The notes below the pieces were generated by a model. The model did no database searches, had not been told where the DNA came from, and saw only the letters and a list, made by a program, of their open reading frames with translations. This document shows positions 8,675 through 50,500 of a stretch of 64,000 nucleotides of DNA, piece after piece. This DNA is from Lepidodermella squamata (Eukaryota; Animalia; Gastrotricha): contig JBLDXI010000015.1 in NCBI GenBank assembly GCA_047495785.1, positions 3,782,001 through 3,846,000 of the forward strand, in the 5' to 3' direction. How positions within the stretch are numbered: position 1 is the first letter of the stretch; each line of letters begins with the position of its first letter. The translations under genes and the position numbers were made by a program.

Positions 8675-10444
8675 TTAGTCAGTTTCTGCCGCCTCGGTTT
8701 CTTCGATTTTTAAAGCATCGTTCGACGCTTCGTCCTGCTCCTTTTGAAGTTCATCGGCCAGCTCCGAAAATCCGAACTGCTTAGCCAGCGCCATAGCTAT
8801 GGTGTTCTTCTCAGTCTCGTTCGATGACGCATTCGAGTTGTCTTCGACAATGTTGATAACCGGCTGTTCGACGCGCGCATGCTTGACGCCACCAGTCGTG
8901 TTTTCGTCCAGTTTCCGCTTCGTCGACTCGTTTTTCAGTGGCGGCGGTGTGGCGAAAGTTGAGCGTTGCTGTTGCTGCTGCTGACCGGGCAATGGCGACG
9001 TGCCAGTGTGACTGAGCATCGCATCACGAGCCGTTTGCCTCGCCAAATGATACAAGCGCTCGCGGTGGGTGAGTAACACCGGCACCAGGGTGCACAGAGC
9101 GGCTGAGGCTTCGTTGACGCTCAACTCGTGGTACGAAAGGCTGCGATCTGGGTTCTTGCGTTTCGCGTCGAATCGGCCGAAAATCATCGAGAAACGACGG
9201 ACACCTTCGATAAAGCCACTTTGAGATGGCGGCGTCGACAACACAGCCTATAAAAAAAGTATATTATAAAAACTCCACCTTAATGATAATCAGTGCTTAC
9301 CAGAAGTTGCTGAAAGTCGTTCGCCTTCATGCGGGCATTTGAGCAGTCAGTTCGCGGGGTCAGGCTGAGTAGATCGGGGTGTTTCGCGAGCGTTTCAGCC
9401 GCCGCCAAAGCGATAGCACTTCGCATGTCGACTGCAAGCGTAACCGGTTGTTTCGACGCAGCGTTGACCATCAACAGCCCAGTTGCGTTCTCATTGACGT
9501 CTGACGAAAAATTTGTTGAACAGAACGACGACGCCTCGCTGTCGGTGTTGTCGGGGAAGTCACCGCTGTTGCTCGGCGACGTGTTGGCGCCGGAGTGATC
9601 TTCATGCTGGCGTTGAGGTAGAACCGGTAGCTTGTTGTTAGCGAAGTAGACGACTGACGGCGAGCCGGAGGAAGATGACGACGAGGCGGTTGGGTAGGCC
9701 GAGTGGGAGACAAGGCTCAGGTTGATCGGTGCCATAGTTGGGTCGATGGGTGTAGATTTCGAGGCGCTGCTGTGCTGCGACATCATGATCAACGACAGGG
9801 CGGCATCACCGGCGCCGCGAGGTGACACGCTCGATGCGTTTGATTTCGATGCGGACGAGTGAACACCCGTTATCGAGTTGGCAGGAGGAGGTGTGGAAGG
9901 CGGCAGGGCCAGACTAGTCTTCACTGACAATAAAGTAGCGCTTTCCGCCGGCGTCAAAGGAGCGCGAAAAGGAGCTGAAAATAAATAAAAATTAATTAAT
10001 TTAAATCGATTTTTTGCGTGAACCAACAAACCTGGACTATTATGCCATTCAGCTAGCGCTTTTTGAAGACGGCGAATGTGAAGGGGTTTTGAGGTCATGT
10101 CGACAAGACGAAGAATTTCAGCAAATTCCTCCTGGGTTGCTTCGACTAGTTGTTGAACATCATCACCGCCGTTTGACACAAACACATCGTAATAACCGAG
10201 CAGATTAGCGCGTTGTAGCAGGCGGAACAGTTCGACCTCTGAGGCAGAACGGGGCAAGTTACGAATCGCTGGCGACGTCATCATTTTAGGCTGGTTCGAT
10301 TCTTGGGGTGTAGGTGAAGGCGACGATGTCGATAAAGCTGGCGATGACGTGCGAGGTTGCAGGCTGACAGGCTTGTGCTCGTCTTCCTCCAAATCGTCGA
10401 TGTCGAGGTCGTCGTCTTCTTCGGCGCAATAAGCTGACGAAGTG
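8675..10444 (-). CDS. NAB: NGFI-A-binding protein (NAB, EGR co-repressor), NCD1 and NCD2
   Basis: NCD1: ELFRLLQRANLLGYYDVFVSNGGDDVQQL...PLHIRRLQKAL. NCD2: RRFSMIFGRFDAKRK...HELSVNEASAALC...LARQ. Exons 10444-10032, 9974-9301, 9247-8675. Confidence 0.93.
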
Positions 10445-10578
10445 CTGCAAAAGCGACACACATTAATAAAAATGAAAGTAATAATGGGCGTATGAAAAAC
10501 GTTTTGCGAGACTCAAATGCGGACTCTCATTATAACATTATTACTACTCATAAAATTAACACCGCGCGACGCACAAAC

Positions 10579-15616: not shown

Positions 15617-16807
15617 TCACTTGCGGATGTGCTCGGCGACAGTCCAGTCAGTCTTGAGCGGGATCGATTGCTTGATCTGAACTCCAGCCGACGTGATAAT
15701 TGCAATATCATACTGAAATTTGGAAGAAAATAGATAAAAATTAGGATTGACACAAAGCGAATTAAGAAATCCTCCGACAATGAAAAAATAAGCCTAACTA
15801 ATTGTTCCGAGTTCGAAATGTTTGACATTCACGGTTTATAAATCAATTCGCAAAATTGACGGATATTGACAAGATTTACGTCTGTGGAGGCAATTATCTC
15901 GTAACGCATCGAGATAATCGAGATTCGATCTTTGACATAATGCAGTAATTTGCGTGAGCAATGGCCCCAAATAACATGGGATGACTTGAAAAACAAGTTA
16001 ATTCCTCAAATATACGAGCGATGAAAGGATTTCCTAAAAATGTTGCGTCAAAAGACTGCTCTACGCTTTCATTTGTAAATTATAGAGTCCATCCTAGAAC
16101 CTAAAGTGAAATAAAATGTAACTAACCTTGTCGTAAGAGCGAGCATCGCGGTAGAAAAGAACGCGTTGGCATTCATCCAGCAACTTCTCGGCTCCAGCCT
16201 GGTCGAGCTTATCAGTCTTCTCCAAAGCCGAGCGCATGATCGGCTGAGCCATGTAGGCGCCAAGGCCGGTCGCAATCGACGGAGCCTCGTACGCAATACC
16301 GAGCAGGTCGACGTAGCCGAGGAAGGGCACAGTGCCGCCTTCTTCCATTCCAGCGACGACCAGGCGGTTCCAGAACGGCTCGAACTTGCTACGGGCGTTG
16401 TACATAACGCGGGTTAGCCACGAGTAGACAGCGCGAGGCGACAGCTGCACGCCGTCATTCTCGCAGTAGTCGTCGACGATCATTTGCTGGATGTGGCGGT
16501 TCAGGTACTGGAAATCGGCGATTTCACCTGACGCAGCAATCACAACTCGGTCATTGACCTTGATAATGCGGTGAATGTTGCGAAACTTGGCCAGAGAGCC
16601 GTAAGAAACCAAGGTATCAGCAGCCAGGGCGACACCACCGTCGAATTTGACCCCCAAAACTGAGGTACCAGTCGTAATGGGCGAGCTAAAAGAGTTATTG
16701 AGGTTAAAAAATCAAGCTCGTGACCTCAATTTTTACCTCATATGGGTATGGGGCTCAGCCTTGGCATGAACGGGAGCATCGAAAACAGTAGCCGGGGTAG
16801 ATAGCAT
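15617..16807 (-). CDS. PSMB4: Proteasome subunit beta type-4 (beta7)
   Basis: Three exons (16807-16737, 16685-16128, 15712-15617): SPITTGTSVLGVKFDGGV...SYGSLAKF...IATGLGAYMAQP...VLFYRDARS...TDWTVAE. Confidence 0.95.
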
Positions 16808-16857
16808 TGTTAAATTTAATATCTATCACAGCAATTTCAAGGTAAAATTAAGATCAT

Positions 16858-17508
16858 TTAATATAATTTAGCTCCCGGCAAAACTTGTTCCTCCCTATCA
16901 ACGCCCAACGAAAAAAACGAACCGTCTTCCGGCTCAACAAATAACGGAATATTTTCTTTCGGATTAAAAGCTATCAACGAGCCTTGAAGATTCTCGTGAT
17001 CTTTGAAAATAAAAGATAGCGTAGTTGAACAAGTTTGCCCATCGCCAAGATCAACCGTCAAATTGCAACCGCCATCTTCAGTTCGCTTGATTTCCAATAC
17101 TTTAACGCAGCATATTCCACCTTCTTCGAAATCGTGGAAAGTTATCTCAGGGCTGCTCAGATCTTCATCAGAATGACGGAAACCGATTCGAAGTCCATTT
17201 TCGAATTTATTCCCGCGGGTGTTCATAAGATTCACACGCGATTCAATATTCGGAAAACCAACGGTAAGGAACTCGGACATAAAGCCTGCAATGTTCTTCT
17301 TCGGGAAGTTGCAAACTGCGATGACTTGTTTTCCAACCAATTCATCAATATTAGGATAGGTTAGTGGTAGCTGAGCAGATGTTTTCCGCAAACCAAATTT
17401 ACCGAAGTCAACATGAATCTTATAGGAAGGATTCCTCGCTCTGGGGAAAGGTTCCGCTTTCACAATAGTTCCGATTCGAAGTTCAATTTTTCTTAAAATT
17501 ACCGACAT
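16858..17508 (-). CDS. csaA: CsaA/Trbp111-like OB-fold chaperone with two tandem domains, bacterial type, intronless
   Basis: ELRIGTIVKAEPFPRARNP...DFG...TSAQ...GKQVIAVCNFPKKNIAGFMSE...NGLRIG matches prokaryotic CsaA. A second, degenerate unit runs EITFHDF...PGAKLY. Confidence 0.85.
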   Translation of the reverse strand: MSVILRKIELRIGTIVKAEPFPRARNPSYKIHVDFGKFGLRKTSAQLPLTYPNIDELVGKQVIAVCNFPKKNIAGFMSEFLTVGFPNIESRVNLMNTRGNKFENGLRIGFRHSDEDLSSPEITFHDFEEGGICCVKVLEIKRTEDGGCNLTVDLGDGQTCSTTLSFIFKDHENLQGSLIAFNPKENIPLFVEPEDGSFFSLGVDREEQVLPGAKLY

Positions 17509-17592
17509 TAGTAAAATCTAAGATGAATACAAGTATAAATTACAAAAAACTAGAATCACTTTTATTTAATAAATAAAGGCAACATTTCGGTA

Positions 17593-18147
17593 TTATCTGC
17601 CATCGAGTGAACGCTCACGTGCAATGACTGCATCCTCGAACGTTACTTGATAAGCCGTGCCTTCGTGAATGATAGCTTCAACCTTAGCTGGGAAGCCAGC
17701 CACCGTAAGGAAACCTTGTATGATCCCAGCGGCAAAAGCAGAGCAGTTGAGACCACCTTGATCTTTCGGTGTAGAAATGAATCGGCATAGAGCTGAATCA
17801 TGCTCGTGTAAATAGTACACATTGTCAACGTTAGAGGCTTTCTGCAAAGAATCCAGCTCACGCCCAAACAAATGGCGCCATAGATTCGATTTGACGAATA
17901 ACAGAATGTTATTGACGCGAACGTCTCTCTTTGAGCCCTTTTCCTGCATGTACAAAACGTCGACCAACCTTTGTCCGACTTCAGCGCCAACAGCTGCTAA
18001 TTGATCGTGGAAATCAGTTGCAGTTTTCGCGTTGTTATGGGTATATTTGACGATTTCCGAAAAGAGCAACGCGAAAGAATGCAAATTGACATCAAGTTTC
18101 CCCTTTGATATAGGAAAATCTTGAACTGAAAATGGCTTTCGAAGCAT
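17593..18147 (-). CDS. TRAPPC5: TRAPP complex subunit 5 (Trs31)
   Basis: VNLHSFALLFSEIVKY...LWRHLFG...FISTPKDQGGLNCSAFAAGII...GFPAKV...VIARE; single exon. Confidence 0.93.
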   Translation of the reverse strand: MLRKPFSVQDFPISKGKLDVNLHSFALLFSEIVKYTHNNAKTATDFHDQLAAVGAEVGQRLVDVLYMQEKGSKRDVRVNNILLFVKSNLWRHLFGRELDSLQKASNVDNVYYLHEHDSALCRFISTPKDQGGLNCSAFAAGIIQGFLTVAGFPAKVEAIIHEGTAYQVTFEDAVIARERSLDGR

Positions 18148-25557: not shown

Positions 25558-28500
25558 ATGCTGACGGCTTACGGCGGGACATCGAATCTGCTCGATATTG
25601 TCGAGCAGATCGGTGCGGATGAGGCGCCCTCCTTACTTCCACCCCTCGATACCACAACAGCCGGCTCGTTGCTGGTTGATATCACTACGTGGAGTTTCGG
25701 CGATTTGGCTCAACGGAAAGCACCCTTTGTCAGCCTAAAACAGACCACGGAAACTTTTCCTACATTCAACAATGAAACTGAAGAGGAAGAACTATTGCTC
25801 GACGTCCGATCTGGCCACCATCCAGGATTTTTAATTCTAATAATTCTGAATCTATGGACAACTCTAAGGTATGCTAAATTTCTAGTTGCGAATTTTGGTA
25901 AATCGTTTTTTCTAGTAATGCGGTCGTTTTACTCGTGATGCTTCGAACTCCTCATCTAAGGCGCCGATTCGGTTGTGTGATTTTAAGCCTATCATTTGCT
26001 GACCTATGCAGCTCAATCATTGTTATGCCATTGGCTATCTACTATTTCGTAATTATTCTTGCTATTTTAAGGCGGAGTTATTCATTCATTATTTTTCCAG
26101 TCAAATTACGACGGTTGGCGGCTAGGAAGCTACTTCTGCGTTGGTTGGGTGACTGCAGATGTTTTCTTTTGCACTGGTAATAAAAAATACAATATTTTCG
26201 AATTTATTGAAATATTTTTCTAATTTTACAGCCAGCATCTGTCATCATGCAAGTATTGCGATTCATCGTTATTTGGCCATCGCAAAACCCCATCAGATGA
26301 GCATGATAACGACAAATACACCCATCATCGTCCAGCTGATCCTACCATCTTGGGCCATTGGGTTGGGTATTGCTGTTATCCTCGCTTTTCAAGCTATGGT
26401 GCGAGAGGACATTGTCTTCAAGGATGGTGTGTAATTTGATTTGGATATAGGATTAAATTTTTTTATTTTTTTTATCTAGATACATGTGGTTTGCAAGATC
26501 GCCTCTACCTCATTTATTCATCAGTAGTATCTTTCTTCATTCCACTTTTCGTGATTATTCTCGTTAGCCTCAAGTCAATACTACTGCTACGGCACCACCT
26601 TAAATTGAAGCAACAAGCGATTCTTAGAACTCTACCTCGACCCATGGCAACATCGAATAACGGCGATTTCGTGAAAGAACAAATCGAAGAGCAGAATTCA
26701 GAGACTACAATTACGGCCGCGGGTTACACGATTCAAATGAGCCAGCCTAAAAAGGAACAACCACCTGAAAATCACGAATCCGACGAAGCGAAAAGGCTTC
26801 AAGATCTGGCGAATGACATATCTTTCAACGCATCAGTTGCTGCTAGAGGGTATAATTTAAAATTGAAAAATAAATTAAAACAAATTAAAAACTTGAGAAT
26901 TTAAGAATTTAATTAAAAAATTGGAAAAGTTGATTAAAAAATTTAAAATGGCTTTTGAAAAATTTTGAAAAATTTTGAAAATTTTGAAACTAAATTTAAA
27001 AAATTTATATCAAGTTAAAAAAAATCATTTTGAGTTGAAAAATTAAAAATTTTAATTTTAATTTTCAATTCAATTTTTTTCAATTTTAGAAGAAAAAGTC
27101 GAGCTATGAGTTTGACGCCCAACATTGACAAGCAGCTGTTGAGCAATATTAGCAAGCAATATCGAAACGTGAAATCGCCACGGATCGATGAATTGAATAA
27201 ATTGACGTCGTTTAAATCGCTGATTGAAACCTACCTCGAACTCGGCTCGTACTGCTACCAAACATCGTCGTCCGTTTCAGTGAGTGCCGGCAACCTTCGT
27301 TCGAGCGCCTCGCGGCAATACTCAAACGACGACAGCGACAGTGACGGGGCCGAAGCGGTTCAGCCGTTGTTCGCCCGAAATGGCTTGGTTATGACCAGCT
27401 CGAGTTCAACTAACACCACCTTACCTCCTCGCGTTAATGTTATGCAAAAAGTGAAAAACCTACCGCAAACCATGGATGTGATACGGGAGGAATCCCACCA
27501 TGAATTTTCGCCGTTATCTATAGCGCAATTATCGGAGAGCCACGTCAGACGGCCGCCCCACAGCCTCGTCCGCCGCGTTTCCTCAATTGTTAGCTTCGGG
27601 TCGGATGTCATGCTAGGCGACGATCATAGCCTCAATTTCGACCTTACAAGCGGCGAATTCGACTCGGCTATGATTTCTGTCGACGAAATGACGCCTAGCA
27701 TTGATTTGCTGACGAGTTTCGGTTTCATAATACCCGAAATACCGTCCCCGGTCGACGAAGAGCACCCTCTAGATCTCCGGATTGTTTTCTCGCGGACATT
27801 ACCTAACATTCAGAAAGAACTCGAGAAGAATAAGGATAAATTAAACCCGAAAAGTAGCCCGCAGCTTGGTAAGATTCGAAAACGGACGGGCCTGAGGAAA
27901 CGGGCCTACTCCATAAATTTGCCGATTGAGCACGTTCTGGTTCAAGAGGCCCCGATCGCTGAGATTGAGACTTATGTGTCACCCGTGGTCCCACGCAAGC
28001 TACTATCGCCCCGCATCAATCGACCCGGTCAGCCGGGCTCGCCGTCTAATAAAGGCGTGCGGAAACACATTAGTTTCAACCCGGCTGCGCGCCAATTTAT
28101 GGCGCAAAGGTCGCCACGTCGTTTTAGTATGCATGAGAACGATTGTGGCGAAGCAGCGGTGGGTAGGCGACCCTCGAGGCGGCTTCGTCCTAGGATACAG
28201 CGAAATTTTAGCCAACGAGTTGTGGCGGCGAGGAATTCCGGAGATCGATTGACCCATCTTTGCGTTAAACCTAACGAGGAGGGGTTAGTTCAGTCTTTCA
28301 TTTTTTATTATAGTTAATTTTTCTGATTTTTAGGGGTAAATTATCTTCACCGGTAAAAAGACAGCCGAGCTCGGTGGATGAAAGTTTGGAGATGGAGGTT
28401 ACCATTGATGAAAATGGCAAACCGGTGGAATTGCAGAATCCGACTAGACTGGTTGTCCAGGTGACGGGTAGCCCGCCTGTCCGGCGCCGGTCTTCCTCGA

Positions 28501-30325: not shown

Positions 30326-33300
30326 ATGATCGTAAGCCTGTCGGGAAGCATCGATGATGCCTCTTCGACGAATTCAACGCCGCCGCCGGAGGATTGGGCC
30401 AGTATTTCATGCATACGAACGCGTTACCTGCCGCTGGTTCTCGTCAACATTTGGGCTATTTTCAGCAATATTTTCGTTGTGATAATTATGATTAGGTCGC
30501 CGTCAATCCGAAGAACCTTTGGCGGGGTCATGCTCAGCCTTTCCATCGCCGACCTATCCACATCTATTCTGATAACTCCATTGGGCCTGCAATATTTTGT
30601 AACAGGAAATACATTCTTTTTTCTGGGTTAAATATTCATTTTTTAGTATAAATGCTCAAAATGGGAACTTGGCTACGCGCTGTGCGGATGGTGGATCACC
30701 TGCAATTGCATGCTATCAGCAGCTTCAATTTCGCATCACTGTTGCATAGCCGTGAATAGATACCTAGCAATAGCAAAGCCACACGAGCACAACTGGCTTA
30801 AAGTTGCCGCTAATTCAGGGGTATATCTTCAAGAAAACCGCTCAGTTTTAAATGAAATTTTATTTAAAGATCCTGCTACGAATTATTATGCCATCCTGGC
30901 TGCTCGGTTTGAGCGTGGCGATTACGGTTGGAATTTATTCAATCTACTCACCCGATGACGTCTACTTCTTAATTGCTCAAAATCAAACGTGCCAGTTCCG
31001 AGGCCGATTTTTGATATTAACAGGCGCCGTTTTCTCGATGGGGGCCCTAACGATAATTTTAGCATCTAGCATTTACTCAATCTGCCTGCTGCGACGGCGA
31101 CTTCAAACCCAGGAGCGTAACGCAGCCGCAAATCGCCGGTCCGTTTTGTCGCGACGAAAAAGCTCACCTAGCTCGTCAAACGGCCATTCAATTGTGCCAC
31201 CGGTTGTCATTTTGACGCCACCCATTCAACCGAGAAGTCCGCTATTGAAAAGAATAAGGCGGCTTTTTATTTGCAAGAAAAACCTAAAACAAAAGAAATC
31301 ACTTCTTCATGCTGCGAGAATGACGATTCCAAGACTTGTGGACTACTACCTGGTAAAATCGGCCTTTAGATTTTGTCAATTTGAAAATAATTTTTTACAG
31401 AAAGAAGACGACTATTTCGGCAAAAATGCACCATCTTCATGGGCGAAATGTCGATCGCTGAGTAGAACTTCAGTTGGAACTGACGCGGATGAAATCAGCG
31501 CTGATTTGTGCAGTAGCAGCTTTTCGGGACAGGGCGCCGCCGGTGGTCGCTTATCAGTTCCATCCCGGTCGTCGATCATCCGACAAGATAGCTGTGCTGT
31601 CGCCCAGGGCGTAATGGAGGCAATTAAGGAGGATGAAGAGCCTGAGGGTGCCAACAAGACGCCGTCAACTTTCACACCCGAGTCTTATCTGTCCCGTTCA
31701 CCCTCGCTAACTAGTTACACTTCAATGCAGGTTCAATTTTTTTAATACATTTTTAATAATTATTTGGCATTCATTGAGAAGTGAAAAGTGGGGTTTAGGA
31801 AAAATTTTGACATCGTGAGATGTTAACGCCTCTTTCAAGATCAATGAACGAGGAGTCGAACGGTATCAAAAAGAGGTTGATAGTCTTCTGGGTTGCTGAG
31901 AAAATGAGTTTAAAAGTTCCCGGGTGAGAATTGCTAATTTCGAAAAATTCGCGCTTAAAAATTTAGTTTTTATTGCATCAATTAATAATTCGTCGCGCAA
32001 TAAATTATGATGTTATTTTCTTATGCGAACTCGAGATTTTTTAGGGTTAATCTGAGGTGAGGAATCTAGCTAGATATTCAAAAATGTTGATGACATCATG
32101 ATAGTGCTTCCACGTTAAACAAAATCGATCAGTCTTTTCGGCGTCACTTTGGGGTCTCCCGTCTTTTGAGGTGGATGGGAGCCTCCTAGAGGTCTACTTT
32201 TCGAATAATTATTCAAAATGCTCAACAAAAACTGAGTAAGAACACCTAGGAATCCAAGAATCGTCCCTCTCAATTCAACACATTCTTTGCTATTTGCTGG
32301 AAAATTCAGCAAATACGCCAAACCCCACTTTTCACTTGTTAACGGTCATTTTATTGAAAATAAAAAATTATTTACCTGAATTAGGCAAAGGACTTCGACG
32401 AGGATGCCGATCTAAAAAAATTTCAGTCCGAAATCGCTGAATTCAACGACTCGGGCGAGGATGGTTTATTCGATTCTGATGAAGATAACGAAGCTCCGAA
32501 ACCGAAAATTCCGATTCGACCTGTTCGATCATTCACGAGGAAGAGGGCTTTCAGCGTTGATTTACCGCTTTCATATCTATTTTTCCAACAAGCCCCCCTT
32601 GCTCAGTTTGAAGCACGTGCGAAAAAGGCGTCTTGCTCATCTGTCGAAAGTCACCTTCAAGGCAATATTCAAGCTGTTCGTCAAGACTCGAACGACCCGA
32701 CGTCGGGCGAGGACAATCAGGTTCGAATGAAAAGCCGTGCTCTGTCAATAACTACGAGCCCATCGCGCAATCGCTTCAACACCCAACCGCAAGCAGTTCT
32801 CAGCAAGCTACGCCACCTTAAATCGTTTGTTCGCCAGGAGGATTCAATCGACGAGGCTGATGAAGCTGTTTTAGTTCGAGAAAGAGCTAAAAAGCCTCGG
32901 GCTCACAGCCTGGCAGTAGTTATCGAGCCACACCACAATAGCTTTGTGAGAACTATCGTAGCCCCATCGGCCATGCATGATGTAGAAGAAGTCGCGGAGG
33001 AAGACACGTTCGTCGAATCGCCAGGTTCGAAATTTGACGAAGAAATTGTCGAAGCTGAGCCGGAGATGATGGTAGGCAATTCTGCTTCAACTGCTTCACA
33101 CCTAATTTCTCCCTACCTACGGCGAATGTCCTCAATAAAGCGATTCATAAGGCGTGACCGCTGCTCGGGTGACTCGTCTGTATCTGAAGGCGAGTTCGAA
33201 ATCGGTGTTTGCGATCGGACTACGCACAAGTTTAAACACAGCCGCGTTTTGCTACAACGCGCCGCGTCTGTTGTTTCGTCGCTCAGTAGTGATAGCTTGA

Positions 33301-33849
33301 AACACCTTCGGCAGTCGTTTAAACAACGCTATTCTGGGGCAAGCAGTACGACTGGGAAGAAAACTTCCCTGGCCCTAGAGCGATTTCGAAGAAGGGAACG
33401 TCAGACTGAACGGGCCTTGTTCTTCGTGCTGTTTTTCTTCCTATTTCTATGGCTGCCTTACCTCATCGCAACTTTTGTTTTCGGTATTTGCCCGGCATGC
33501 ATTGATCAGGTATTTATCGGGTAAAAAATCGCGATTTTGAGTCTTTAATTTTTTTCGATAGGATGTCTTAAACGCGTTTTCGTGGTGTGCATATGCTTCA
33601 GGTGCGGTGAATCCTTTGTTGTATGCTATATTCAACCGGCAGTTCAAACATTCGGCGAAATATTTCGTGCGGAAAATGATACACCGACGGCGTGCTCGTC
33701 GTTTTTCAGCCCGGCCTGGGTCGTTGCAGCGTAGATCAGCCAAATTTGTCTCGCGGACTAGCCTTGGCGAACTTGGCGTATCTCCTAATGGAGGCGGCGT
33801 CTCACTTAATACCATTCAACAATTGATGACAAACCCGGACAGTGACTGA
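30326..33849 (+). CDS. Class A GPCR, 5-HT2-like, copy 2
   Basis: LSIADLSTSILITP; WITCNCMLSAASISHHCCIAVNRY; FLWLPYLIATFVFGICPAC; SGAVNPLLYAIFNRQFK. Confidence 0.85.
31779..32337. mobile_element. Putative ~560-bp non-autonomous TIR element in a GPCR copy 2 intron
   Basis: Perfect 18-bp inverted repeat AAGTGAAAAGTGGGGTTT (31779-31796) / AAACCCCACTTTTCACTT (32320-32337); no clear TSD. Confidence 0.5.
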
Positions 33850-38992: not shown

Positions 38993-41900
38993 TCACTGAG
39001 CGTGTAATTTGCCGTCATCGCCAATTATGAAAGTCGGCGTTCGGCTTGGCACGGTGAGTTCGGCCGCGGTTGCGCGTCGCATTATCGGCTTTTTCGGCCC
39101 AATGGGCGCCGTTGAGCTGAGATTGGCAGGAGCACTTGGCCTAACGAGTGGCGACGGGGTTGCGATCGGTTCGCGGCGCGTTGAAGCCAGAGCGGATAAA
39201 TCGACTGTAAATCGCCGGTTCGCGCTACCCGGGCGCTGGAAAGGTTCCGGCGAGGGCACCCCGCCCGAGGCAGACTCACTATCGAACGTATCATCTGCAA
39301 ATAAATAATGATTTTTCAAGTTTTTTCGAAATATTTCATCATTCAAATGAAATTTAAGGATAACACTTATTTCCGTTTCTCATTGATAAACGGGAGAAAC
39401 TCGATTGTAAGAGTCTTAATCGCTCCATTTTGAGGTTTCAGAACTAATTTTTCCCATTTTTTTGAAACTTTTCAATGTTGGCTTCCGATCATATCGGAAA
39501 AATCACTTATTTGTAAAATCGATACTTGCTCAGAAGGCTGAAATAATACTCGAAAAACGAGTAATAGTGGGATCTATGGGCTAAATTGCCAAAACGAGAA
39601 AACGAGAAACTTGAAAACTAATGTTTTATATTTTGGGAAAATTTATGCATTAAGCATATTTTTTACGATTGATAGAGCTCCAGTTATCATTCATTTCCAT
39701 TCGAAAGATTAGACATCAATTTAATCGATATTAAAACTCACCATTATAATCTGAGATGGATCTACTGCTAAGCCGGCCCCTATTCGGTGTAGTTGGCTTG
39801 CTTTGAGCTGGAGCAGATTCATCACTTTCACTCTCTCGCCTCTCGTAATACTGCGGCAAATCAGGCACAGTTCCTAGGGTCGGCGAAACTTTCTCCCCGC
39901 CATCCTCTCTTCTATTCATCCCAGACGCCATAGACATGGCATGTTCAATCTCAGGCTCGGGCTCGTCGTTTTCTTCCACCCTGGAGAACGGCGTAGTCAA
40001 CTGCGCAACAGTGTGTCGTCTCGCCATCGAAACAGTCGGTTTGTTAACAACGTAAGTTGTTTTCAAGGAAGACGGCGGCTTTGGCTTTTCAACAATAGTA
40101 CCCGGGGCAGATTTCGTCCGGCTTAAACTTGGTTTCAATTCCTTTTCCGGTTTCTCATCAATTTGTTGATGCCGCTGGCTGGTGGTAGTAGTAGTAGTAC
40201 CCGATGCGATTTGCAGCTGTTTCATCAGAAATTTAGCCATCGCCTCGGCAACCATGTCCTCTAGCAAATCGGGCGGTTGATTGACCAGGGTTGATACATC
40301 ATCTTGACTGGCAATGCTATTCCGGGCAGAAATTATACGAACACTCTTGCCCTGTTGCGGTTTGTTATCGTCATAAACAACAGCCGTTCCTTCAGTATTC
40401 ACGCCAATAGTGTTAGTCGCCGCGGCTGGTTTCTTCGACAATTTCGACTTCCGTCTTCGGCGTTTCGTGACCACGGGCACTTCGATAACTGAAATTATAG
40501 AAAAATGTGTGATTAGGCTTGATCTCGACTGAAAATCGTAATTTCTCCCCGAGATTGATTACTTTCACTATTCAATTTTGCAGGTAATTTAGACTGATAA
40601 TCGAATTAAAATCGATAACCAAAAATAGGAAAACCTGCGAATAAGACGATTTTTTTTAAGATGGATCAACTTACTTTTTTCGACAACTTTCGGCCGCGAT
40701 TTCCCGAGGTACCAAAACGGGACAGGCGGCGGCGATGGAGTTATGCCTCGAGGGACCCTTGCCAGCGGGGTTTGACGTCGCCAGCTGTGTCGCCGTCTTC
40801 GGGTCGGCTGGGTCACCTCGCAACTAGGCTGCGTGTAACACCGTTTCACTCGTTCACACTCCTCGCGAGACACCGGCCTCGGGTAGTAGGGCGACGGAGA
40901 TCGCAGCCCGGACCGCAAAAATCGGCATTTGACCGAAAAACAGTTTTTACCATGCCGGCATTGTTGGTAGGAATTGCCGCGTTCGATCACGTATTCGCGA
41001 TTCGTTGGGCTTTTACTGCGACTCCGGCCGCGTCGTCTAACCGGCCCACTTTGGCACGCCTTGTCGATTTGGCGACGGAAAGTTACAATCGGCGAAGATC
41101 GATTCATCATTTCCGGCGAGGATACCGGGCTCATTCGATCACTCCTCGCGACTCGCCGCGATTCAACTTCAAGCTGATCGAAATGATAGGGCGAACAACG
41201 AAAACGGGTCGGTTCGTGGATGATAACTTGCTCATTTCTATCGTAATCAACCTCTTCATCGTCGTAATCGTAATTTTTAGGCGGCTTTTTCGAGTCAATC
41301 AAATCGGATATTTGTTCCGCAAATTTTTTACTATTAGCCAAATTAGCAGGCTCAGAAATCATTACACCGCTCTTAGCTACTATTTTTTCCTCTTTGGCCG
41401 GCAAATTTTCCATTGAAGCGAGAGACACGTCGACGTTGAAGCTGGAAAAACCAGGCTTGAAATTTTCATTCGCCTCACTTTTCGGGCCTAAATAGTACAA
41501 TCGAACGTCGATTTTAGCTTCACCGCAAACATTAAGGTGGTTGCGGCTGTAGAATGGTACCACGTGTTGTGTAGCCTCGGCGCAACACGGGCGCTGGAAG
41601 CCGAATCGTTTCGCTTTCAGCTGAAGCTCTTCGAAAATCGGAACCATATCCAACGAGGCCATAGCTTTTACGCTAGGCACCACACTTCCGTAAAATTCAA
41701 GTAACACAACATATAGCAGGCGTGACGTAGTAGAGAAGGCGTGTTGAAGCTGGTCAAAAGTTGCGTCGAATAGGCAAGACTTGCCAGATTTGAAAGAGTA
41801 TGCGTTTTTCTGTGATTGAAGCGTCGTCAAGAGAACGGCTTCATCTGCGCATCGAAGAACAGGAATTCTATCGGGCGGAACCAAATCGACGACTTGCATT

Positions 41901-42013
41901 GGAAAATTTAGAAAACGGAAGGCAACCGCCGGAATTACGACGATTTCTTTACGATCGTCGACATGGATCGAGTCGACAATCACGTCTAGAGCGAATAGGT
42001 CGGAAGAAGTCAT
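38993..42013 (-). CDS. MAP10: MAP10 (KIAA1383)-like microtubule-associated protein
   Basis: N-terminus LFALDVIVD...PAVAFRFLNFP...FKSGKSCLF matches the MAP10 N-terminal motif. Three exons (~42013-40636, 40489-39741, 39295-38993) with a disordered S/R-rich tail. Confidence 0.7.
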
Positions 42014-42399: not shown

Positions 42400-45300
42400 T
42401 CAGCTGACGGGACATTCGACATAATCGGTACCGGCAATTGTAGGCACCGAAAACGCATATAGGGCTGAAAAATAGAAAATTAAAATTCCACCTTAAAATT
42501 TATTTGCTTTACTCACCTGCTCTCGATAGGTATGTCAGAGTGCCGAAACGACCAGATGGGGCCGAATCGTAGAAATAAGCGCAAATGCCGGCTGGTCCGT
42601 GGCAAATCGGCGACGATTCGCGATTCGTTCGACGGCGGTAGTTGCTGCCGAAGTTAGCGCAACAAGACTTTGCCGCGCCGCCTTCAATCGCGCTCTGTTC
42701 CTCCAGGAACAAATCATTCGCAGCCGCTATGACACGATCAACATGAATTGTGCCGTGGAACATGATCAAACCATGGTCGTTTTCGGATAACGTCGCCAGA
42801 CTCGATAGAGCCTCGACGAAAAGTTGACGGTAGTTCGGGTCAGGCACACGATTTAAGGCGGCTTCAACGTGCAACGCAAATTTCAGTTCGTGTTGCGTCA
42901 TTTCTCGAGTTAGAGAAGACGGAATATGTCTATCGAAGACTACTATACCCTCGCAACGTTCCAACAACCGCCAAACACTGGCGTAAAATCCGATCGGGAC
43001 TCGATTAAGGGAGCCGTCAAGACGCCGCCGCCGGAACCATTGGCCATGGCGGTAGACTTCGCCAACGTCCATTTCTTCCTCGGATTGGCCGTCCTTCCCG
43101 TCGTCTGTTGATGCGTTGCTGAGCGTGCGTTCAAAGGCGAAAACTGAGGGTAGGCGATCGCCACTCCTGTCGACGCCCTTATCCGGGCCCGGGCTGTTCG
43201 CCTGTGAGAAACTGTGTTCGCCCGCCAGTTCTTTCGCGAAATGAGACGCCTGGCGCGCGAAGGAACGTTTCGAAGCGCGACTAGTCACCATTTGGCCGAC
43301 GGACATGCTCGACGCGGCGCGCATGCTCTTGTCGCTCGGGGCCAGTTCGGAGCCGGACAGCACTCGAGATAGCAGGGTTTTCATTTGAAACGGACTCAGG
43401 TTGAACAGGTGCTCGGTCGCCTCCTCAGGCGTACACGACATCATAGCACCCAGCTCGCTAGCCATGACCTAAAAAATTACGTTGTTAATAAAACGAAAAG
43501 AAGGAAAGGGAATATTTAAATAGAACCACATTTTATATCCGATAAAAAATTTGACCGCTAACAATTAAAAAACGATAATTTTTCGAATTTTTCGAATTTC
43601 CTAGAAAAGCGCAAGTGTTTGGCTTGAAAATGAGCGATTCTTAGCTTTCCCCAAGCCATGAACAAATTGTTCAAGTAAATATTAAAATTTCCAGTTTTAG
43701 ACCGTTGGGATGTTCCAATCCTCCTTAAACAGAGAAAATCATTATTTAGCCGATAAGTCCAACTGTTTCAGATTGATGCGAAGCAACTAGCATAACTATT
43801 GGAACTTATGAATATCTAGTGAAATTTCTCACATCAGAATAAGAACTTCAAATAAAATCGACTGAGACCTAAAAATAGCTAAATATTTGAAAGGTGAGGC
43901 TATGTTCAGCATCAGTTGATAATTCATCAACTGATGCTGAAAATGGAAACTTTTTAGGGCGGTTTTTTAATTTCAATTCGCGCTCTTTAGCTTAGAAGCC
44001 CATTTTCACCCATAGCAAGGCTGATGGTTAATAGCTTCGTTTTGATATCGACTCAATTCAAGTTTATTGAAACCTTGAAATTGCTTCAAACTTTTTCATT
44101 CAATTATTTTCGACCGAAAAAAAGATAAAATAGGATCCTAAAAATGAAAATTACCTGTGTAATAAGACCGATGCGAATGCGCAACATGTTGCTGAAAAGC
44201 CGAGGTTCGCTCTTCATAAGCATCGAAAGGTCGACTATCAATTCTTGGGTGATAACCGTCAATGTCGGATCGCCATTGCAAGTCGATCGAATCAACGCCT
44301 CGAGTTCATCCGGCGGTAACGGGGTGGTCACTACTTTTTCGCTGGGTTCAGGTGGTAGACCGATTGTCACCTGTTTTCCGCGGACCAATACGTCGGTTAG
44401 ACATTTGGCGAGGTCATCGGGGCGACGGCGCAATACCCCGGCGGCGTGACGAACCAGCCACCACTCGCGGGTCTCCGACGCGCGGTCACCCAGTTCAGCG
44501 ACCAGGTCTTTGACCGGGCAGCCAAACGGCGTCGGCCAGTCGAGACCTTTGGCCAGGTACAAACAATGAATCAAATCGGCTTGTTCGTGAAGATTGCTCG
44601 TTTCACGCAGAGATTCAATCAGCTCATTGATATCACTTTGCAACGCGAGTTGGATGGCTCCGATCGAACTGGGTGACGGGTGCATGGTGACTAACAGATT
44701 CGACGGGCGGGCTCGAGGGGTTGTAGCCAGTGGCGAATTAGCTATGTCGGAACAACTCGCCGACACCACCATACCGCCTTGGGGTGAGCAGGAAGACGGC
44801 CTGGCTAATCGCTGCATAGGCACCCCGCCATGATGCTCGACCGTACTGATAAACTCATCCAAACTCAATTCGGTCAGGGGCACAAATGCGGCTATCGACG
44901 GGTCTAGGGTGGTATTGATGTTGTCTTTTCTTGAATTCGGGGTCGTTCGGTCGTTGTCACCGGGTAAGAACTCGGCCGATGCCGGGCGCAAATTCGGCGT
45001 TGGGTACACAGATTGGCGCCGCTTTGACACGATACCAGCGACGCGTTTCGCCGTCATCGACATGCGCCGGCCCACATCGCGAATCGAATGCTCGGTATCA
45101 TTCAACTTGCTGTCATCCTGAGACTCGGCAACAATCGACGACAGCCTAGCAACAGGGTGGTGGGATGAGTGCAGCTGAATGAAGCGATCTAGCGACTGCT
45201 TCGAAAAGTGCTCAGAATGCTCGAGGAAGGACAAACGCGTCACGCAGGACGTTGAAATGAACTGCTTCAGGGTACCAACTTGCACCCGATGACCGCCGAT

Positions 45301-47174
45301 AATACCCGATTGAAGGTTCTGAAGCGCTGATATGAAAATATTTCTCGCCTCATCGGCCTGGTCCAGCAAGCGGTGGTTGATCGTTAGAACAACCGTAGGG
45401 CGCCCGAGCATGGTCCAATTTTTGTTTAAATACGCAACAGTCGTCGTGAATACATCAATGAGAAATTCGTTGTCCAAACCGAGGTAAAACACCTGTTGAT
45501 CGAGGAAACTGGGCGAAAACACGAAAACTTCGTCGTGTAACATATACAGCTTTGACGTAGCAAGCACGCCCAGTTCGTTGGAGGCGCGACCGGACAGGCC
45601 GAGGCGTTTATTTTTCCCCAAATGGGAGTAGAGGTACGAAAGAATTCGGGCGCGATGAACATGAACCGGGGCGGCTTCGTTCAAAGTTTGGCAAACTATG
45701 CCGTGTTGTGCGATTCGTTCTTTGATTTCAAGATCTTCCGCCAGGATAACAACCTGGGTTACAACTTCCGGCCGGGTTTGGCTGATCAATCGGCGGTTAA
45801 GGGGGTCGATCTCTCCGGGTGAAATCAGCCGTTCGTAGACCATTCTCGCGACAATGTACAGCGATTGGCCCCATTTGTGGGGCACTCGGCCGAACGGGTG
45901 GCGGGCCTGCGAGCCCGGGTTAGCCCGTTCAAGAGCGACTAGTTCCGGGTCGACCCGGTACAGCTCCGGTATGACGTCGATGCCGTCATGATGCACAGTT
46001 AGGGCCTCGAGGCGCTTCAACAACTGCCCAGCATCGCTAACATCTCGCTCAATATCGGCTTGATGATCCTCGTTTGAGCAGGCAACGTTATGATCGCCAA
46101 ATAAAGCATCAAGAGCCAAATATGCAAAGAAAATTGGCCACTCGCACTCGATATTCTGAAAAAAAATTAAGTAGGATTTTTCAGTGGAAAAGCGAGATTT
46201 CTTACCTCAAATAGTTTAAGCTCATGAAGTTCGTAGTGAAGCCGATTCGGGTCTTCGAGAGCTGTTTTGTAGCCGTCTCGTAAAAATCGTTTACAGCCAT
46301 GTTTGCCCTCCAATTTTTCGCGAATTTCACGTTTCGTAGCCTCTACAACTTGCCGGTCTTCAACAGCAAAAGCCGGGTAGCCAATGACAGCTAAAACAGC
46401 CGAATCGACCTCTTTCGATAGTGACTCGCGCGGCAACATTGACAACAAAACAGCGTTACACATTGAAGTTTCGTCAGGTAGCGTGTGGATTAAGGAGGCT
46501 GAACCGCCCTGCGCGCCGAATAGATTCAACCCGTCAAGGGAGCGAAGAGCTGCGTGGGCCATACCCACCGAGCTAGCATTCAGCTCAGTCAAACCGTGAT
46601 TCGTCTTATCACCCCGCTCCCAAATACCATAATCAGGAATACGATACGCGGCTTCGATGTAAAATACAAGATTTTGAATGAAAGCAACCTCATCCAAGGT
46701 GCGGATAATCTGAAGGCCGGACGTCGTAGTTTCAGCAAGGATAAGCAGGTACAACGAAACGGCGTCGAGTTGTAAATGGCCCCATTTGTCATCGGCGACA
46801 ATTGGTTGACAAGTCCGGCTGTCGTATTTCGCATGCAGCGAATCAATCGGAGCTTGGGTCACCTTAAATTTCTCCAATTTTTCGCGTTGAAGCATAAAAC
46901 AACGTAAAAGGCCTCGCATCAGCCGGACTACACATTGCTCGAATTCATATGCCTTCGCTCGGTCGACCTCGCTATCGGACGATTTTCGGTAAACGAGGGA
47001 CAGCGCCCACACGGCGAGGATTGAATACACATTATCACGAATCCACGCGTCCGGATTTTTATCGGTGTCAGCTATCAAACCTGTGACAGGGTGCTGCAAC
47101 TCTAGAATAGTTTTTGACACCACCCGGGTGAAATAGGTTATTCGAGCTGACGACGAAGCTGTTCGTCGCCGCAT
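42400..47174 (-). CDS. PHKA: Phosphorylase b kinase regulatory subunit alpha, copy A
   Basis: [52 protein letters not shown]; C-terminal CaaX CPVS*. Exons 47174-46206, 46155-44155, 43468-42517, 42464-42400. Confidence 0.93.
43905..43941. repeat. Perfect 16-bp inverted repeat with a 5-nt loop in a PHKA-A intron
   Basis: TTCAGCATCAGTTGAT aattc ATCAACTGATGCTGAA. Confidence 0.85.
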
Positions 47175-47570
47175 TTTGTCAACACTAGTCCGTCAATTTC
47201 ACTCGATATATCATTCGCTAAGATTTGCCTAAAAAAATTGGAAAAAATTGTTTCATTTCAGTATTTATAATAACGATTTTCATGGTGTTAAGCACCGCTC
47301 GGACGTAAAATAAACGGCAGGGAAACTAAACGTGACGTAACACAAGGGAAGACAAGATAATTTTTGATGGTGTCGTTTGCAATAAATATTAATTCAAGTA
47401 AGAAAAAGACAGCTCACAATATTTTAATTAAAAAACAACAAGTACAAATTTGACAAGCAACTTCGCGTCTACCACAGTCGAAGAAAGAATACTACGGGAT
47501 GGCAAAAAAGCGCAAAATTATATTCAATAGTGATGTCATCATAATCTTCAAATGTACAAAAATAAGGCAA

Positions 47571-50500
47571 TCAGCTAATCGCGCAGTCGATTGTATCAGA
47601 CCCGGCTGTTGTTGGCAGGGTGAATGCGTAGGTGGCAGCTCGGGCGATGTAGGACAGCGTGCCGAATTTGCCAGACGGGCCAGAGTCGTAGAAATAAGCG
47701 CAAATACCACTCGGCCCGTGGCAAATCGGCATGGGCGGCTTTTCAACACCACCCCGCATGATTTCACGCCGAAACGTCTGGCCAGCCTCATTCGCGCAGC
47801 AAACTAGGGCGGAGGCGCCTGGCATCGTTTCTTGATCGGCGAGGAATAGATCGTTAGCCGCGGCGATTAAGCCATCGACCTGAACGTGCCCGCGGAAACC
47901 AGTCATGCCGTGGTCGTGTTCGGTCAGCGTTGTCAGCACTGAAATCGCTTCGACGAAAAGTTGGCGGTAATTCGGGTCTGGGATGCGATTCAAAGCCGCC
48001 TCAACGGTCAGCGCGAATTTCAACTCCTGCTGGGTCATTTCTCGGACGAGCGATGACGGCAGTGCCCTGCCGTAGATGATCAAAGCATCACATCGGTTCA
48101 GAATTTGCCAGACCCCAGCGTAGAAGCCGAGAGGTACCCGGTTCAACGCACCGTCTAGACGGCGACGACGATACCAAGTGCCCCGGGTGACGATTTCAGA
48201 CACGTCTAGTTCCTCCTCTTCCTCGGTTGAAATAGCGGAGGTCGGGGTGTTAGTCCCGGACCGATCGCTAGAATCTTGCCGATCGAATGCGAAAACGTTG
48301 GTGTTGCCAGCTGAACCAGGCGTAACAGGTTGAACCTAAACGGAAAAATCATAAAATTATTGCGTGTTGTTACAAAAAAATGTTGACAAACCGTTCCTAA
48401 CGCCTCGGCAACATGGCTGGCTTGTCGTGTGAACGACCGCTTAGAGACTCGATTCGTGACCATTTTTCCGACAGACATTGTCGACATGTCGCCACTGCGA
48501 TGTTTAGGTGCCAACTCGGAGCCAGAAATAACTCGATAGAGCATGATTTTCACCTGATAAGGACTCAGGTTGAACAATTGACTCGTCGCTTCCTCCGGCG
48601 AGCAAGATAACATAGCCGCTAGTTCACTGGCCATTACTTGGGTGATCAGCCCGATGCGAAGTCGAATCATGTGGCTGAATAGGCGTTTCTCACTCTTAGC
48701 CAGGTTAGACAATGCAATAAGAAGTTCCTGTGTTAACACGGTGAGACTAGGGTCATGGTTACACGTATTCCAAATCATTGTTTCCAGTTCGTCGGGCGGT
48801 AACGGCCGTGAAACCACCTTTTCGTTAGGTTCAGGCGGTAGACCAAGCGAAACCTGTTTGCCTCGAACCAGCAGGTCAGTCAAACATTTCGCAAGATCTT
48901 CAGGCCTTCGGCGCAGAACTCCGTTAGCGTGACGAACCAGCCACCATTCGCGAAGCTCAGCCGCCCTCTCCCCTAATTCGGCAATCAATTCTTTAACGGT
49001 ACATCCCAGTGGGGTCGTCCAGTCTAGACCCTTCGCCAGGTACAACGCATGAACCAAATCGGCCTGTTCGTACAAATCTGTTGTTTCTTTCAAAGAATCG
49101 ACCAATTCGTTGATATCTGCGTGAGAAACTTCGTGAGATGAGCCCAGTGATTGAGGATTTGGGTGTTTCGTGACCAGCAAATTCGAAGGCCGAGCTCGAT
49201 TAACCGCTCCAGTAGGTGGGAAAACCATCGATCCAAACGGGCTGTCGGTAACGTTAGCTCGAGCCAAATGAGTCGACGCAGTCATCGGAGCGCCGTCTGT
49301 CTCACATTTAGAGATGAACTCTTCGAAAGATAGAGCCTCAGATGACGGGTTAGTGATATTGGTATTATGAGGCAAAGCCGGGGATGTATCCCCTGTATCT
49401 TCTCCCGACGAAGCTGATGGTCGGAACTGCCCAGGGACCTGATAAACAGATTGCCGACGCTTCGAAATCACCCCCTGAAATCGCTTGGCAACAAGTGATT
49501 TCCTTCGATTCAATGGTTGACGATGACTTGCTGGATATGCGTCCTCATCGGCAACCGGAACGGCAGAGGGCGCGAGCTTTGAAGTCACAGTTTCTGCTGA
49601 GTATTGTGAAATAAATCGCTGCAATTGTTTATCCGAAAATTCGTCAGAATGTTCGAGAAATGACAGACGTGAAACGCAGCTGGTGGAAATGAAGTCTTTC
49701 AAATAGCCGACTTGAACACGCTGACCAGCTATGATTCCTGATTGAAGGTTTTTCAAGGTCGCAATCATAGACTCTCGGGAAGAATCATTGTGATCCATTA
49801 GCCTGTGATTCAGAACAACAACAACCGTGGGCCGACCTAACATAGTCCAGTGTTGATTCAAATACGCGACAGTCGTTGAGAACATGTCGATTAAATACTC
49901 GGCGTCTTGGCCCAAATAGAACACGCGTTGATCGAGAAAACTTGGTTGAAATGCGAAAATCTCGTTATGGAGCATGTATAACTTGGACGTAGCAAGGACT
50001 CCAAGCTCAGTCGAAGCTCGACCTGACAAACCAAGGCGTTTGTTTTTGCCGAGATGAGAATACAGGTAGGAAAGAACCTTAGCATTGTGAATGTGCATAG
50101 GTGCGGCCTCGGCGATCGTTTGACAAGTGACACCGTGCTCTTCAACCCGTTGTTTTATTCCGTCATCTTCTGCTAGCAAGACGACCTGCGTGACTACTTC
50201 AGGTTTTCGGTGGCTAGTCATGCGACGATTCAGGGGATCCAGCTCGCCAGGGCTGAGAAATTTTTCGGCGACAAGCCCAGCGACAACATATAGCGACTGT
50301 GCCCACATGTGCGGGATTTTCCCAAGGGCGACGCGCTCTTGACTACCTGGATTTTTGTACTCTTCGCCAACTTTTTCAAGTGGAACGCTGTACAGCTCTG
50401 GCACAGCTTTCATCGAGCTCTGAGAAATCAACAAAGAATCAAGTTTATCGAGGTATGCTTTGGCGACAGCTCCAGATTCTGTTGACGGGTCAGTTGGATC

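Follow-up and report, generated by a model that had tools for sequence, protein, structure and literature searches.

A tandem CsaA-like gene of probable bacterial origin between TRAPPC5 and PSMB4 in a gastrotrich genome

How does a gene of a bacterial protein family come to lie between two animal housekeeping genes, and what might it do there? We addressed this question for a 64,000-nucleotide stretch of the Lepidodermella squamata (Gastrotricha) assembly GCA_047495785.1 (contig JBLDXI010000015.1, positions 3,782,001 to 3,846,000), here called the window, in which an open reading frame (ORF) for a CsaA-like protein separates TRAPPC5 from PSMB4. We consider it likely, with a probability of about 0.72, that this gene genuinely belongs to the host genome, goes back ultimately to bacteria, was acquired horizontally, and encodes a single-chain pseudo-dimer of the CsaA type. 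Horizontal acquisition from bacteria is well supported, while domestication has the indirect support of an intact ORF, conserved motifs, and codon adaptation.

The gene is an intronless ORF on the minus strand (16858..17508, ATG start, 216 codons plus TAA), just as it had first been annotated, and its translation contains every motif quoted at the time as a mark of CsaA (AEPFPRARNP, DFG, TSAQ, NFPKKNIAGFMSE, and NGLRIG). TRAPPC5 lies upstream as a single exon encoding 184 aa (17593..18147; Pfam TRAPP, 5.5e-35), and PSMB4 lies downstream with its ATG at 16808 (16094..16808; Pfam Proteasome, 1.1e-26); both are on the minus strand, like the CsaA-like gene. The spacer from the TRAPPC5 stop to the ATG of the CsaA-like gene is 84 nt long (17509..17592), as initially reported, and that from its stop to the PSMB4 ATG is 49 nt (16809..16857), one less than the 50 given before. 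PSMB4 does contain an intron, as had been claimed: exon 1 (16737-16808) and exon 2 (16094-16685) are separated by a 51-nt GT..AG intron (16686-16736), with the junction placed by means of an uninterrupted orthologue on the metagenome contig L003.

We asked what kind of sequence surrounds the gene. Metazoan genes elsewhere in the window encode NAB (with its NCD1 domain), FLYWCH, Tudor, and Nop53 proteins, a rhodopsin-type G protein-coupled receptor (GPCR), a C2H2 zinc-finger protein, and two tandem PHKA/B proteins. The closest relative of the TRAPPC5 protein is P0238 (79% identical), encoded on the 10.7-kb contig L003, and the TRAPPC5 proteins of jellyfish and octopus are 45-48% identical. For a 777-aa exon of a phosphorylase-kinase gene, identity is 60% to a metagenome protein and ~40-45% overall to proteins of annelids, nemerteans, and molluscs. 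The matches to named animals, mostly spiralians, point to a protostome host, probably a spiralian micro-invertebrate with ~50-nt introns, distinct from the rotifers, nematodes, and tardigrades sequenced so far. The relative synonymous codon usage (RSCU) of the CsaA-like gene correlates with that of pooled host ORFs at r = 0.48 (individual host genes, 0.09-0.75), compared to -0.23 to 0.23 with the genes of its relatives. Its GC content is 0.41, that of the window 0.44, and bacterial promoter and terminator motifs around it occur at chance level, with no excess. With metazoan genes throughout the window and host-like codon usage in the CsaA-like gene, contamination is very unlikely. The initial annotation had reached the same view from the neighboring genes, which indeed lie on the same strand at 84 and 49 nt.

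The N-terminal half of the protein (aa 6-109, 17182..17493, minus strand) is a conserved OB domain of the CsaA type and presumably the ligand-binding protomer. Residues 6-109 match Pfam tRNA_bind with 43.8 bits (cutoff, 27). The best NCBIfam matches are CsaA/PRK10089 models, although the whole protein misses every curated cutoff (NF007494, 108.8 versus 109; NF007495, 109.2 versus 117; TIGR02222, 106.9 versus 119.65), the nearest by 0.2 bits; the models for the C-terminal domain of MetRS (MetRS-C) score ~35-40 bits. A sequence search of the PDB returned CsaA chains at 5e-21 to 9e-14, YgjH/Trbp111 at 3e-6, MetRS-C at 1e-3, and EMAPII at ~5e-3. Solved CsaA proteins are 35-45% identical to this half. 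In Foldseek comparisons of the modeled domain, the top 12 matches were all CsaA (root mean square deviation [rmsd], 1.0-1.9 A), with 2q2i, 2nzh, and 1gd7 at an rmsd of 1.0-1.6 A and a target TM score of 0.87-0.93. Both searches thus place the OB fold nearer to CsaA than to Trbp111, MetRS-C, or EMAPII. The segment that corresponds to the CCA-binding Lys/Arg/Ser triad of EMAPII carries the CsaA-type SSAQ instead, as judged by eye. The distinction drawn earlier between CsaA-type and EMAPII-type motifs therefore holds, with the two sets of PDB E values far apart.

The initial annotation had described only the first ~110 aa as CsaA-like. That part is readily recognizable, but the remainder proved to be a diverged copy of the same domain (aa 120-216, 16861..17151, minus strand), joined to the first by a linker (aa 110-119, 17152..17181) of variable length in the family alignment. 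A profile of the N-terminal half aligned end to end with a profile of the C-terminal half in hhalign (probability, 97.6%; E = 3e-12; 104 columns). Pfam found no match in the C-terminal halves of six family members, so the duplication is revealed solely by comparing profiles. AlphaFold2, run on the family alignment, gave a confident two-domain model (mean pLDDT, 93.9; pTM, 0.89) in which the C-terminal half is a beta-rich fold and the only low-confidence block is the linker (residues 111-120; mean pLDDT, 63).

The two halves are conserved to different degrees. Positions at least 80% conserved make up 31 of 104 in the N-terminal half versus 11 of 97 in the C-terminal half, and mean pairwise identity within the family is 45% versus 30%. 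Compared to distant relatives, the window protein is 49-57% identical in its N-terminal half and 18-33% in its C-terminal half, a difference that points to selection on the half that bears the pocket, with its motifs SSAQ and ARNPSYK. The C-terminal half is nonetheless conserved among the 20 tandem proteins aligned, ending in a tail of the form G-x-D ... G-x-x-L-[FY]. The simplest reading is a covalent single-chain pseudo-dimer with one pocket-bearing protomer and one presumed structural protomer. Most likely, the C-terminal copy replaces the second subunit of the CsaA homodimer and does nothing more.

We searched for relatives among 1.84 billion representative proteins and considered the best 150 of 1635 matches. 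These included, besides bacterial CsaA of ~110 aa, about 30 clusters of proteins of 200-260 aa, and the only eukaryotic names among the 150 were Rotaria and Rhizophagus. In a tree of N-terminal domains (69 sequences), a tandem clade of 21 sequences, which we call type A, is nested in the diversity of bacterial CsaA, beside alphaproteobacterial single-domain CsaA (support, 93/83). The clade was recovered with support of 99/98 and 97/98 in full-length trees; alphaproteobacterial single-domain CsaA served as the outgroup. The window protein shows the three features that define type A: two homologous domains, the tail motif, and a place inside the supported clade.

Genomic context assigned several type A members to bacteria or eukaryotes. 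P0085 lies on the contig of a bacterial metagenome-assembled genome with ExbB/ExbD, PGI, and SMC, and P0088 is encoded on a bacterial contig that also carries LGT, SSB, and Legionella_OMP. P0083, the top match, adjoins a gene for a DtxR-type repressor, and genes for GatC, ribosomal protein L33, and ankyrin proteins lie on the contig of P0101. P0086 is encoded without introns in the bdelloid rotifer Rotaria socialis, and P0091 comes from the fungus Rhizophagus irregularis. The clade members P0092, P0093, P0094, P0096, P0121, P0147, and P0148 were left out of this classification.

The window protein groups with P0001, P0002, and P0098 (95/88 in the N-domain tree and 89/88 in the full-length tree), and these four share a two-residue insertion and a C-terminal Leu-Tyr. 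The three relatives, from the runs SRR31089922 and SRR10663362 and the assembly ERZ12289971, are encoded on short contigs with no other sizeable ORFs and with GC contents of 0.29 to 0.53, which fits an origin in three different eukaryotes. In the rooted full-length tree, this subclade joins the Rotaria clade weakly (74/79), and all bacterial-context sequences, together with Rhizophagus, fall on the opposite side (83/86). The approximately unbiased (AU) test rejects a single eukaryotic clade (p = 0.0035, and p = 0.0014 without two doubtful rows). We had at one point treated P0120 as eukaryote-like since it groups with Rhizophagus. This assignment was dropped on account of a bacterial-style AzeJ-like partner gene 57 nt downstream, and the AU test was repeated without P0120.

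Two further scans covered genomes and metagenomes. The metagenome scan with the window protein matched at least 80 loci, all encoding single-domain marine CsaA no more than 53% identical over residues 7-134, and the matches listed included neither a close relative nor an informative context. Among 185,579 genomes of bacterial and archaeal species, the second scan likewise matched at least 80 loci, from many phyla and all single-domain. All 160 matches listed from the two scans are single-domain proteins of ~100-120 aa, and those from the species genomes name no bacterial carrier of the tandem form. We found no relatives of the tandem family in the viral contig collection.

Several observations on the wider family stand apart from the type A clade or extend it. 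A second group of two-domain proteins of ~200 aa, which we call type B (P0089, P0103, P0109, P0142, P0152, P0153, P0163, P0193, and P0205), has tails ending ...TAD..VP.G..L and branches separately, next to single-domain bacterial CsaA. By sequence, the tandem fusion of the CsaA fold seems to have arisen at least twice. The contig that encodes P0129 (L176) carries two tandem copies of a tandem-domain gene (185-925 and 1049-1747), of which the second also matches the window gene in a translated search. The 38-kb contig that encodes P0120 and its AzeJ-like partner (L171, GCA_040384225.1) is rich in orphan genes and also carries RING-finger, subtilase, and SNF2/DEAD helicase genes; its candidate sources are a host-associated bacterium, a virus, or a eukaryote. 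A giant-virus vector for this contig was considered and rejected, based on the lack of relatives in the viral contig collection.

The contig that carries P0238 comes from a sister species and offers a comparison of the locus itself. It is syntenic with positions 4-18 kb of the window: Tudor, Nop53, NAB, FLYWCH, PSMB4, and TRAPPC5 genes are common to both, with 70-74% identity between the coding sequences. On L003, 44 nt separate the TRAPPC5 stop from the PSMB4 start, and a tblastn search of the 10.7-kb contig found no CsaA-like sequence. The window ORF and its two short spacers occupy exactly the place of this 44-nt spacer. The difference could be either an insertion in the window lineage or a precise loss in the L003 lineage. 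At the insertion boundaries, we found no convincing target-site duplications, terminal repeats, or traces of mobile elements. With the contigs of P0001, P0002, P0098, P0129, Rotaria, P0120, and P0083, the window shares only the gene itself. As a separate observation, the 51-nt PSMB4 intron (after codon 23) is missing from the L003 orthologue (L003:918-1640), which means that one of two closely related species gained or lost an intron immediately next to the inserted gene.

The short spacers bear on how the gene might be expressed. The TRAPPC5 spacer contains AATAAA (17561-17566) and a pyrimidine-rich stretch ending in TTAG (17518-17521), 9 nt before the ATG. The PSMB4 spacer contains ATAG (16823-16826), 14 nt before the ATG, and the L003 spacer is similar (...CATAG, 15 nt, ATG). 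From their sequence, AATAAA may be a polyadenylation signal and TTAG a (trans-)splice acceptor site. Pyrimidine-rich motifs that contain AG precede each ATG but are no more than suggestive of spliced-leader sites, and Rfam had no matches in the window, spliced-leader RNAs included. The same-strand spacing, with spacers of 84 and 49 nt here versus 44 nt on L003, is of the trans-spliced-operon type (about 50-100 nt), and together with the motifs it appears to resemble the trans-spliced operons of several invertebrate groups. The gene is thus probably expressed as part of a tight, operon-like TRAPPC5-PSMB4 unit, which would let a foreign ORF without a promoter be expressed.

The bacterial members suggest what the family might do. 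An AzeJ/VioH-like S-adenosylmethionine (SAM) cyclase gene is the next gene in three of the five bacterial contexts with a called downstream gene, and the downstream genes of P0085, P0101, and P0120 are homologous (28-53% identity). Genes predicted to encode such class I SAM enzymes lie directly downstream of bacterial tandem genes at L004:10810-11475, L005:10810-11676, L173:10810-11598, and L171:10735-11823. The nearest solved relatives of the partner are the azetidine-2-carboxylate (AZE) synthases VioH (2e-16) and AzeJ (1e-13). AzeJ residues Tyr18, Phe134, Leu136, Arg172, and Tyr175, essential by mutagenesis (PMC11794875), are aligned and identical in the partner. No secretion genes are linked to the members examined for this (P0085, P0088, P0083, and P0101).

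ProRS and AlaRS load AZE, a proline mimic, onto tRNA (cited in PMC11794875). Trbp111 holds the 3' CCA end of tRNA inside its barrel, and Arc1p and AIMP1 are pseudo-dimers (PMC11286949). The OB folds of Arc1p and MCP1 deacylate aminoacyl-tRNAs that carry small amino acids (PMC12021450). By analogy, the N-domain barrel of the tandem proteins would most likely bind a single-stranded tail, either the 3' CCA/aminoacyl end of a tRNA, as in Trbp111 and Arc1p, or an unfolded peptide, as in CsaA. Because several bacterial members directly precede an AzeJ/VioH-like SAM cyclase, we propose that the family may protect translation from AZE or a similar small nonprotein amino acid, and that eukaryotes would have taken only the protective half of the bacterial gene pair. 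Together, these facts suggest that mischarged tRNA may be what the tandem proteins act on and that eukaryotes may have acquired the proteins for protection.

A bolder version of this proposal, which we regard as speculative and rather improbable as a whole, is that tandem proteins form a new translation-protecting class. In producer bacteria, they would accompany an AZE synthase and clear or sequester tRNAs mischarged with AZE or a similar small amino acid, by means of the OB barrel that deacylates in Arc1p and MCP1. The window animal, bdelloid rotifers, and an arbuscular-mycorrhizal fungus, as eukaryotes of soil and fresh water, would have captured just the protective gene, independently of one another, as a defense against a proline mimic in their surroundings, and in the window animal, insertion into an operon-like pair would have provided expression without a promoter of its own. 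The literature searched describes no dedicated AZE-tRNA deacylase.

Taken together, the evidence suggests the following history. The tandem architecture would have arisen once for the type A clade, whose members come from several bacteria, bdelloid rotifers, Rhizophagus, and the window lineage with its three eukaryote-like contigs. The window lineage would have gained the gene by horizontal transfer, probably before its split from the organisms of P0001, P0002, and P0098. The gene would then have taken on host codon usage, and it came to lie between TRAPPC5 and PSMB4, a conserved pair on one strand with a very short spacer. Horizontal transfer is the best explanation because the family is bacterial at its root and its eukaryotic occurrences are few and polyphyletic. 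The initial annotation had proposed such an acquisition, and the host context, the absence from the sister contig, the patchy distribution, and the AU test (p = 0.0014) all bear it out. A broad, vertically inherited metazoan or eukaryotic clade, which it had named as the outcome that would speak against transfer, did not appear in the trees or the AU test. By sequence, the transfer is not recent, since bacterial identity in the N-terminal half is 57% at most among the matches listed, codon usage is that of the host, and the subclade includes eukaryote-like sequences. As to direction, passage of the tandem form from bacteria to eukaryotes is favored because bacterial members span at least three subclades and form an operon-like pair with the partner gene.

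Other origins have to be weighed against this one. If a bacterial read or contig had been joined into an animal scaffold, an intronless gene of a bacterial family that is missing from a syntenic sister contig is what one would see. Such a chimera would need to place exactly one ORF in a 44-nt spacer and leave both neighbors undamaged, with same-strand host genes at 84 and 49 nt, a codon usage that fits the host and no bacterial relative, a GC content near that of the window, and identity to bacteria, among the matches listed, of at most 57% even in the N-terminal half; we regard an assembly artifact or contamination as extremely unlikely. An ancient eukaryotic gene, inherited vertically and lost in almost all lineages, would account for the grouping of the window protein with three eukaryote-like sequences (89/88) and, weakly, with the Rotaria clade (74/79), as well as for the deep divergence of the sequences and their native composition. 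It is very unlikely, given that the AU test rejects one eukaryotic clade (p = 0.0014), that Rhizophagus nests among bacterial-context sequences, that the whole tandem clade falls within bacterial CsaA diversity, and that Rotaria and Rhizophagus are the only named eukaryotes among the best 150 of the 1635 matches; the standard animal OB proteins, EMAPII/AIMP1 and MetRS-C, are only distant matches. The domain might instead have been duplicated in a eukaryote, with the fused gene later taken up by host-associated bacteria. Some bacterial carriers do look host-associated, with Legionella_OMP or ankyrin genes nearby, and such bacteria often acquire eukaryotic genes; moreover, in the rooted tree, the animal-like sequences form a sister group of the bacterial ones and do not nest among them. 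Speaking against this direction are the spread of bacterial-context members over at least three separate subclades, a conserved partner gene that follows at close distance, as is typical of bacterial operons, outgroups that are all bacterial single-domain CsaA, and the type B group, which by its tree position alone originated among sequences grouping with bacterial CsaA of one domain. We consider this reversal unlikely.

Two alternatives concern what the gene does now. The sister species manages without the gene at this locus, as expected if the insertion were neutral, unexpressed, or decaying and did nothing for the animal. That explanation is distinctly unlikely, as the 216-codon ORF is intact and its N-terminal half has kept near-invariant motifs (49-57% identity versus 18-33% in the C-terminal half), the predicted fold is of high confidence, the codon usage is that of the host, and the gene sits within a compact, conserved pair. 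The protein could also be a classical CsaA, that is, a SecB-like export chaperone that hands precursors to SecA. Its best sequence and structure matches are indeed CsaA secretion chaperones, and CsaA is described as a SecB substitute in Bacillus subtilis (PMC4361572). This role is improbable in view of the tandem fusion in place of a homodimer, the retention of pocket motifs in one half only, and bacterial members that pair with a SAM-cyclase-type enzyme and not with secretion genes. Animal cells are also not known to have a SecA-dependent export pathway. A role unrelated to Sec-dependent secretion is therefore likely.

Several points nonetheless count against a horizontally acquired, expressed, and translation-related pseudo-dimer. 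Most clade members are on short contigs, and their bacterial or eukaryotic label depends on a few neighboring genes. The interior of the tandem clade is largely unresolved, and since the animal-like group lies beside the bacterial one and is not nested in it (74/79 and 83/86), the branching order by itself cannot settle which way the tandem form was transferred. L003 is known for 10.7 kb, and the gene could lie elsewhere in that genome, which would mean relocation or loss instead of gain. The best named animal matches of the host TRAPPC5 and phosphorylase-kinase proteins are just 40-48% identical, short local segments aside. Operon-like expression is predicted from the spacing and the AG-containing spacers. 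The AzeJ-like pairing holds in just three of five cases; P0083 is followed by a different class I methyltransferase and P0084 by an unclassified one with a weak Methyltransf_33 match, and the window itself has no AzeJ-like partner gene. Finally, the pocket motif SSAQ is unlike the Lys/Arg/Ser triad of Arc1p and MCP1 deacylation, so catalysis is speculative, and CsaA itself is described as a chaperone that binds peptides.

The tandem protein can be compared to several known systems. It is like CsaA (TIGR02222/PRK10089; structures 2q2i, 2nzh, 1gd7, 3g48, and 5zdi) in the OB fold of its N-terminal half, its signature motifs, and its branch within bacterial CsaA. It differs from the ~110-aa CsaA homodimer in being a 216-aa protein of two fused domains, encoded by an animal and scoring below curated cutoffs; in addition, bacterial members of the tandem clade pair with an AzeJ-like enzyme and not with secretion genes. 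Trbp111 and YgjH belong to the same superfamily and have the same fold (Foldseek, 3ers at 9e-6 and 8vtz at 5e-5), and binding of the tRNA 3' CCA end in the manner of Trbp111 is plausible for the window protein by analogy. Trbp111 is a homodimer whereas the window protein is a tandem fusion, and it is farther away than CsaA (3e-6 versus 5e-21).

The closest parallel in design is found in the pseudo-dimeric tRNA-binding domains of eukaryotic multi-synthetase complexes, those of Arc1p, AIMP1 (p43, EMAPII), and MCP1, in which one functional OB protomer is fused to a module that replaces the dimer partner (PMC11286949), an arrangement that is predicted here. In contrast to these proteins, the window protein is remote in sequence (E ~5e-3), and its second module is a complete, diverged OB copy and not a truncated one. 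It also lacks GST and lysine-rich domains. Foldseek alignments of the whole two-domain model to Arc1p-C/EMAPII-like structures span 167-218 columns but are loose (query TM score, 0.45-0.57; rmsd, 6-10 A). The pseudo-dimer design of tandem CsaA-like proteins was apparently reached independently of Arc1p and AIMP1, from a CsaA ancestor. In the literature searched, we found no link of CsaA to animals and no description of a tandem single-chain CsaA/Trbp OB fold.

As an acquired gene, it is comparable to the foreign genes of bdelloid rotifers (PMC3499245): an intronless gene of a bacterial family lies among host genes, with adapted composition and a patchy distribution, and Rotaria itself has a member of the clade. 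Bdelloid foreign genes are subtelomeric according to the abstract of PMC3499245, whereas the window gene is inside a compact housekeeping pair.

Elsewhere in the window, we noted features that are separate from the CsaA-like gene. Two tandem phosphorylase-kinase alpha/beta-like genes (42509-51596, minus strand; Glyco_hydro_15 and KPBB_C matches) have long exons with gaps of ~28-47 nt, suggesting very short introns and a recent tandem duplication. A GC-rich gene (0.52-0.60) at 61586-63532 on the minus strand encodes a 648-aa protein with three C-terminal C2H2 fingers and lies ~50 kb from the NAB (NCD1) gene (9280-10461, minus strand); it could encode an EGR-type factor, the usual partner of NAB. 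Long ORFs of 265-474 aa at 27106-28317, 30852-31745, 32727-33524, and 40589-42013 had no Pfam match and may be lineage-specific genes or further foreign genes.

Apart from bdelloid rotifers and some arthropods and nematodes, animals still provide few well-documented cases of gene transfer from bacteria. The window gene is an unusually clean case, with host genes less than 100 nt away on both sides, a syntenic sister without the gene, and host-like codon usage. The initial reading is also corrected in three respects: the protein belongs to a tandem subfamily and is no plain CsaA, its acquisition is old, and its role is likely unrelated to Sec secretion. If the spacing does reflect a trans-spliced operon, the locus would show how a foreign ORF without a promoter can gain expression in an animal. 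For the family, until now annotated just as "tRNA-binding domain protein," the pairing with AzeJ/VioH-like genes provides a concrete hypothesis that is cheap to test, and the AZE proposal ties in with the 2025 finding of a catalytic OB fold. The partner genes themselves could widen the known range and gene neighborhoods of AZE synthases.

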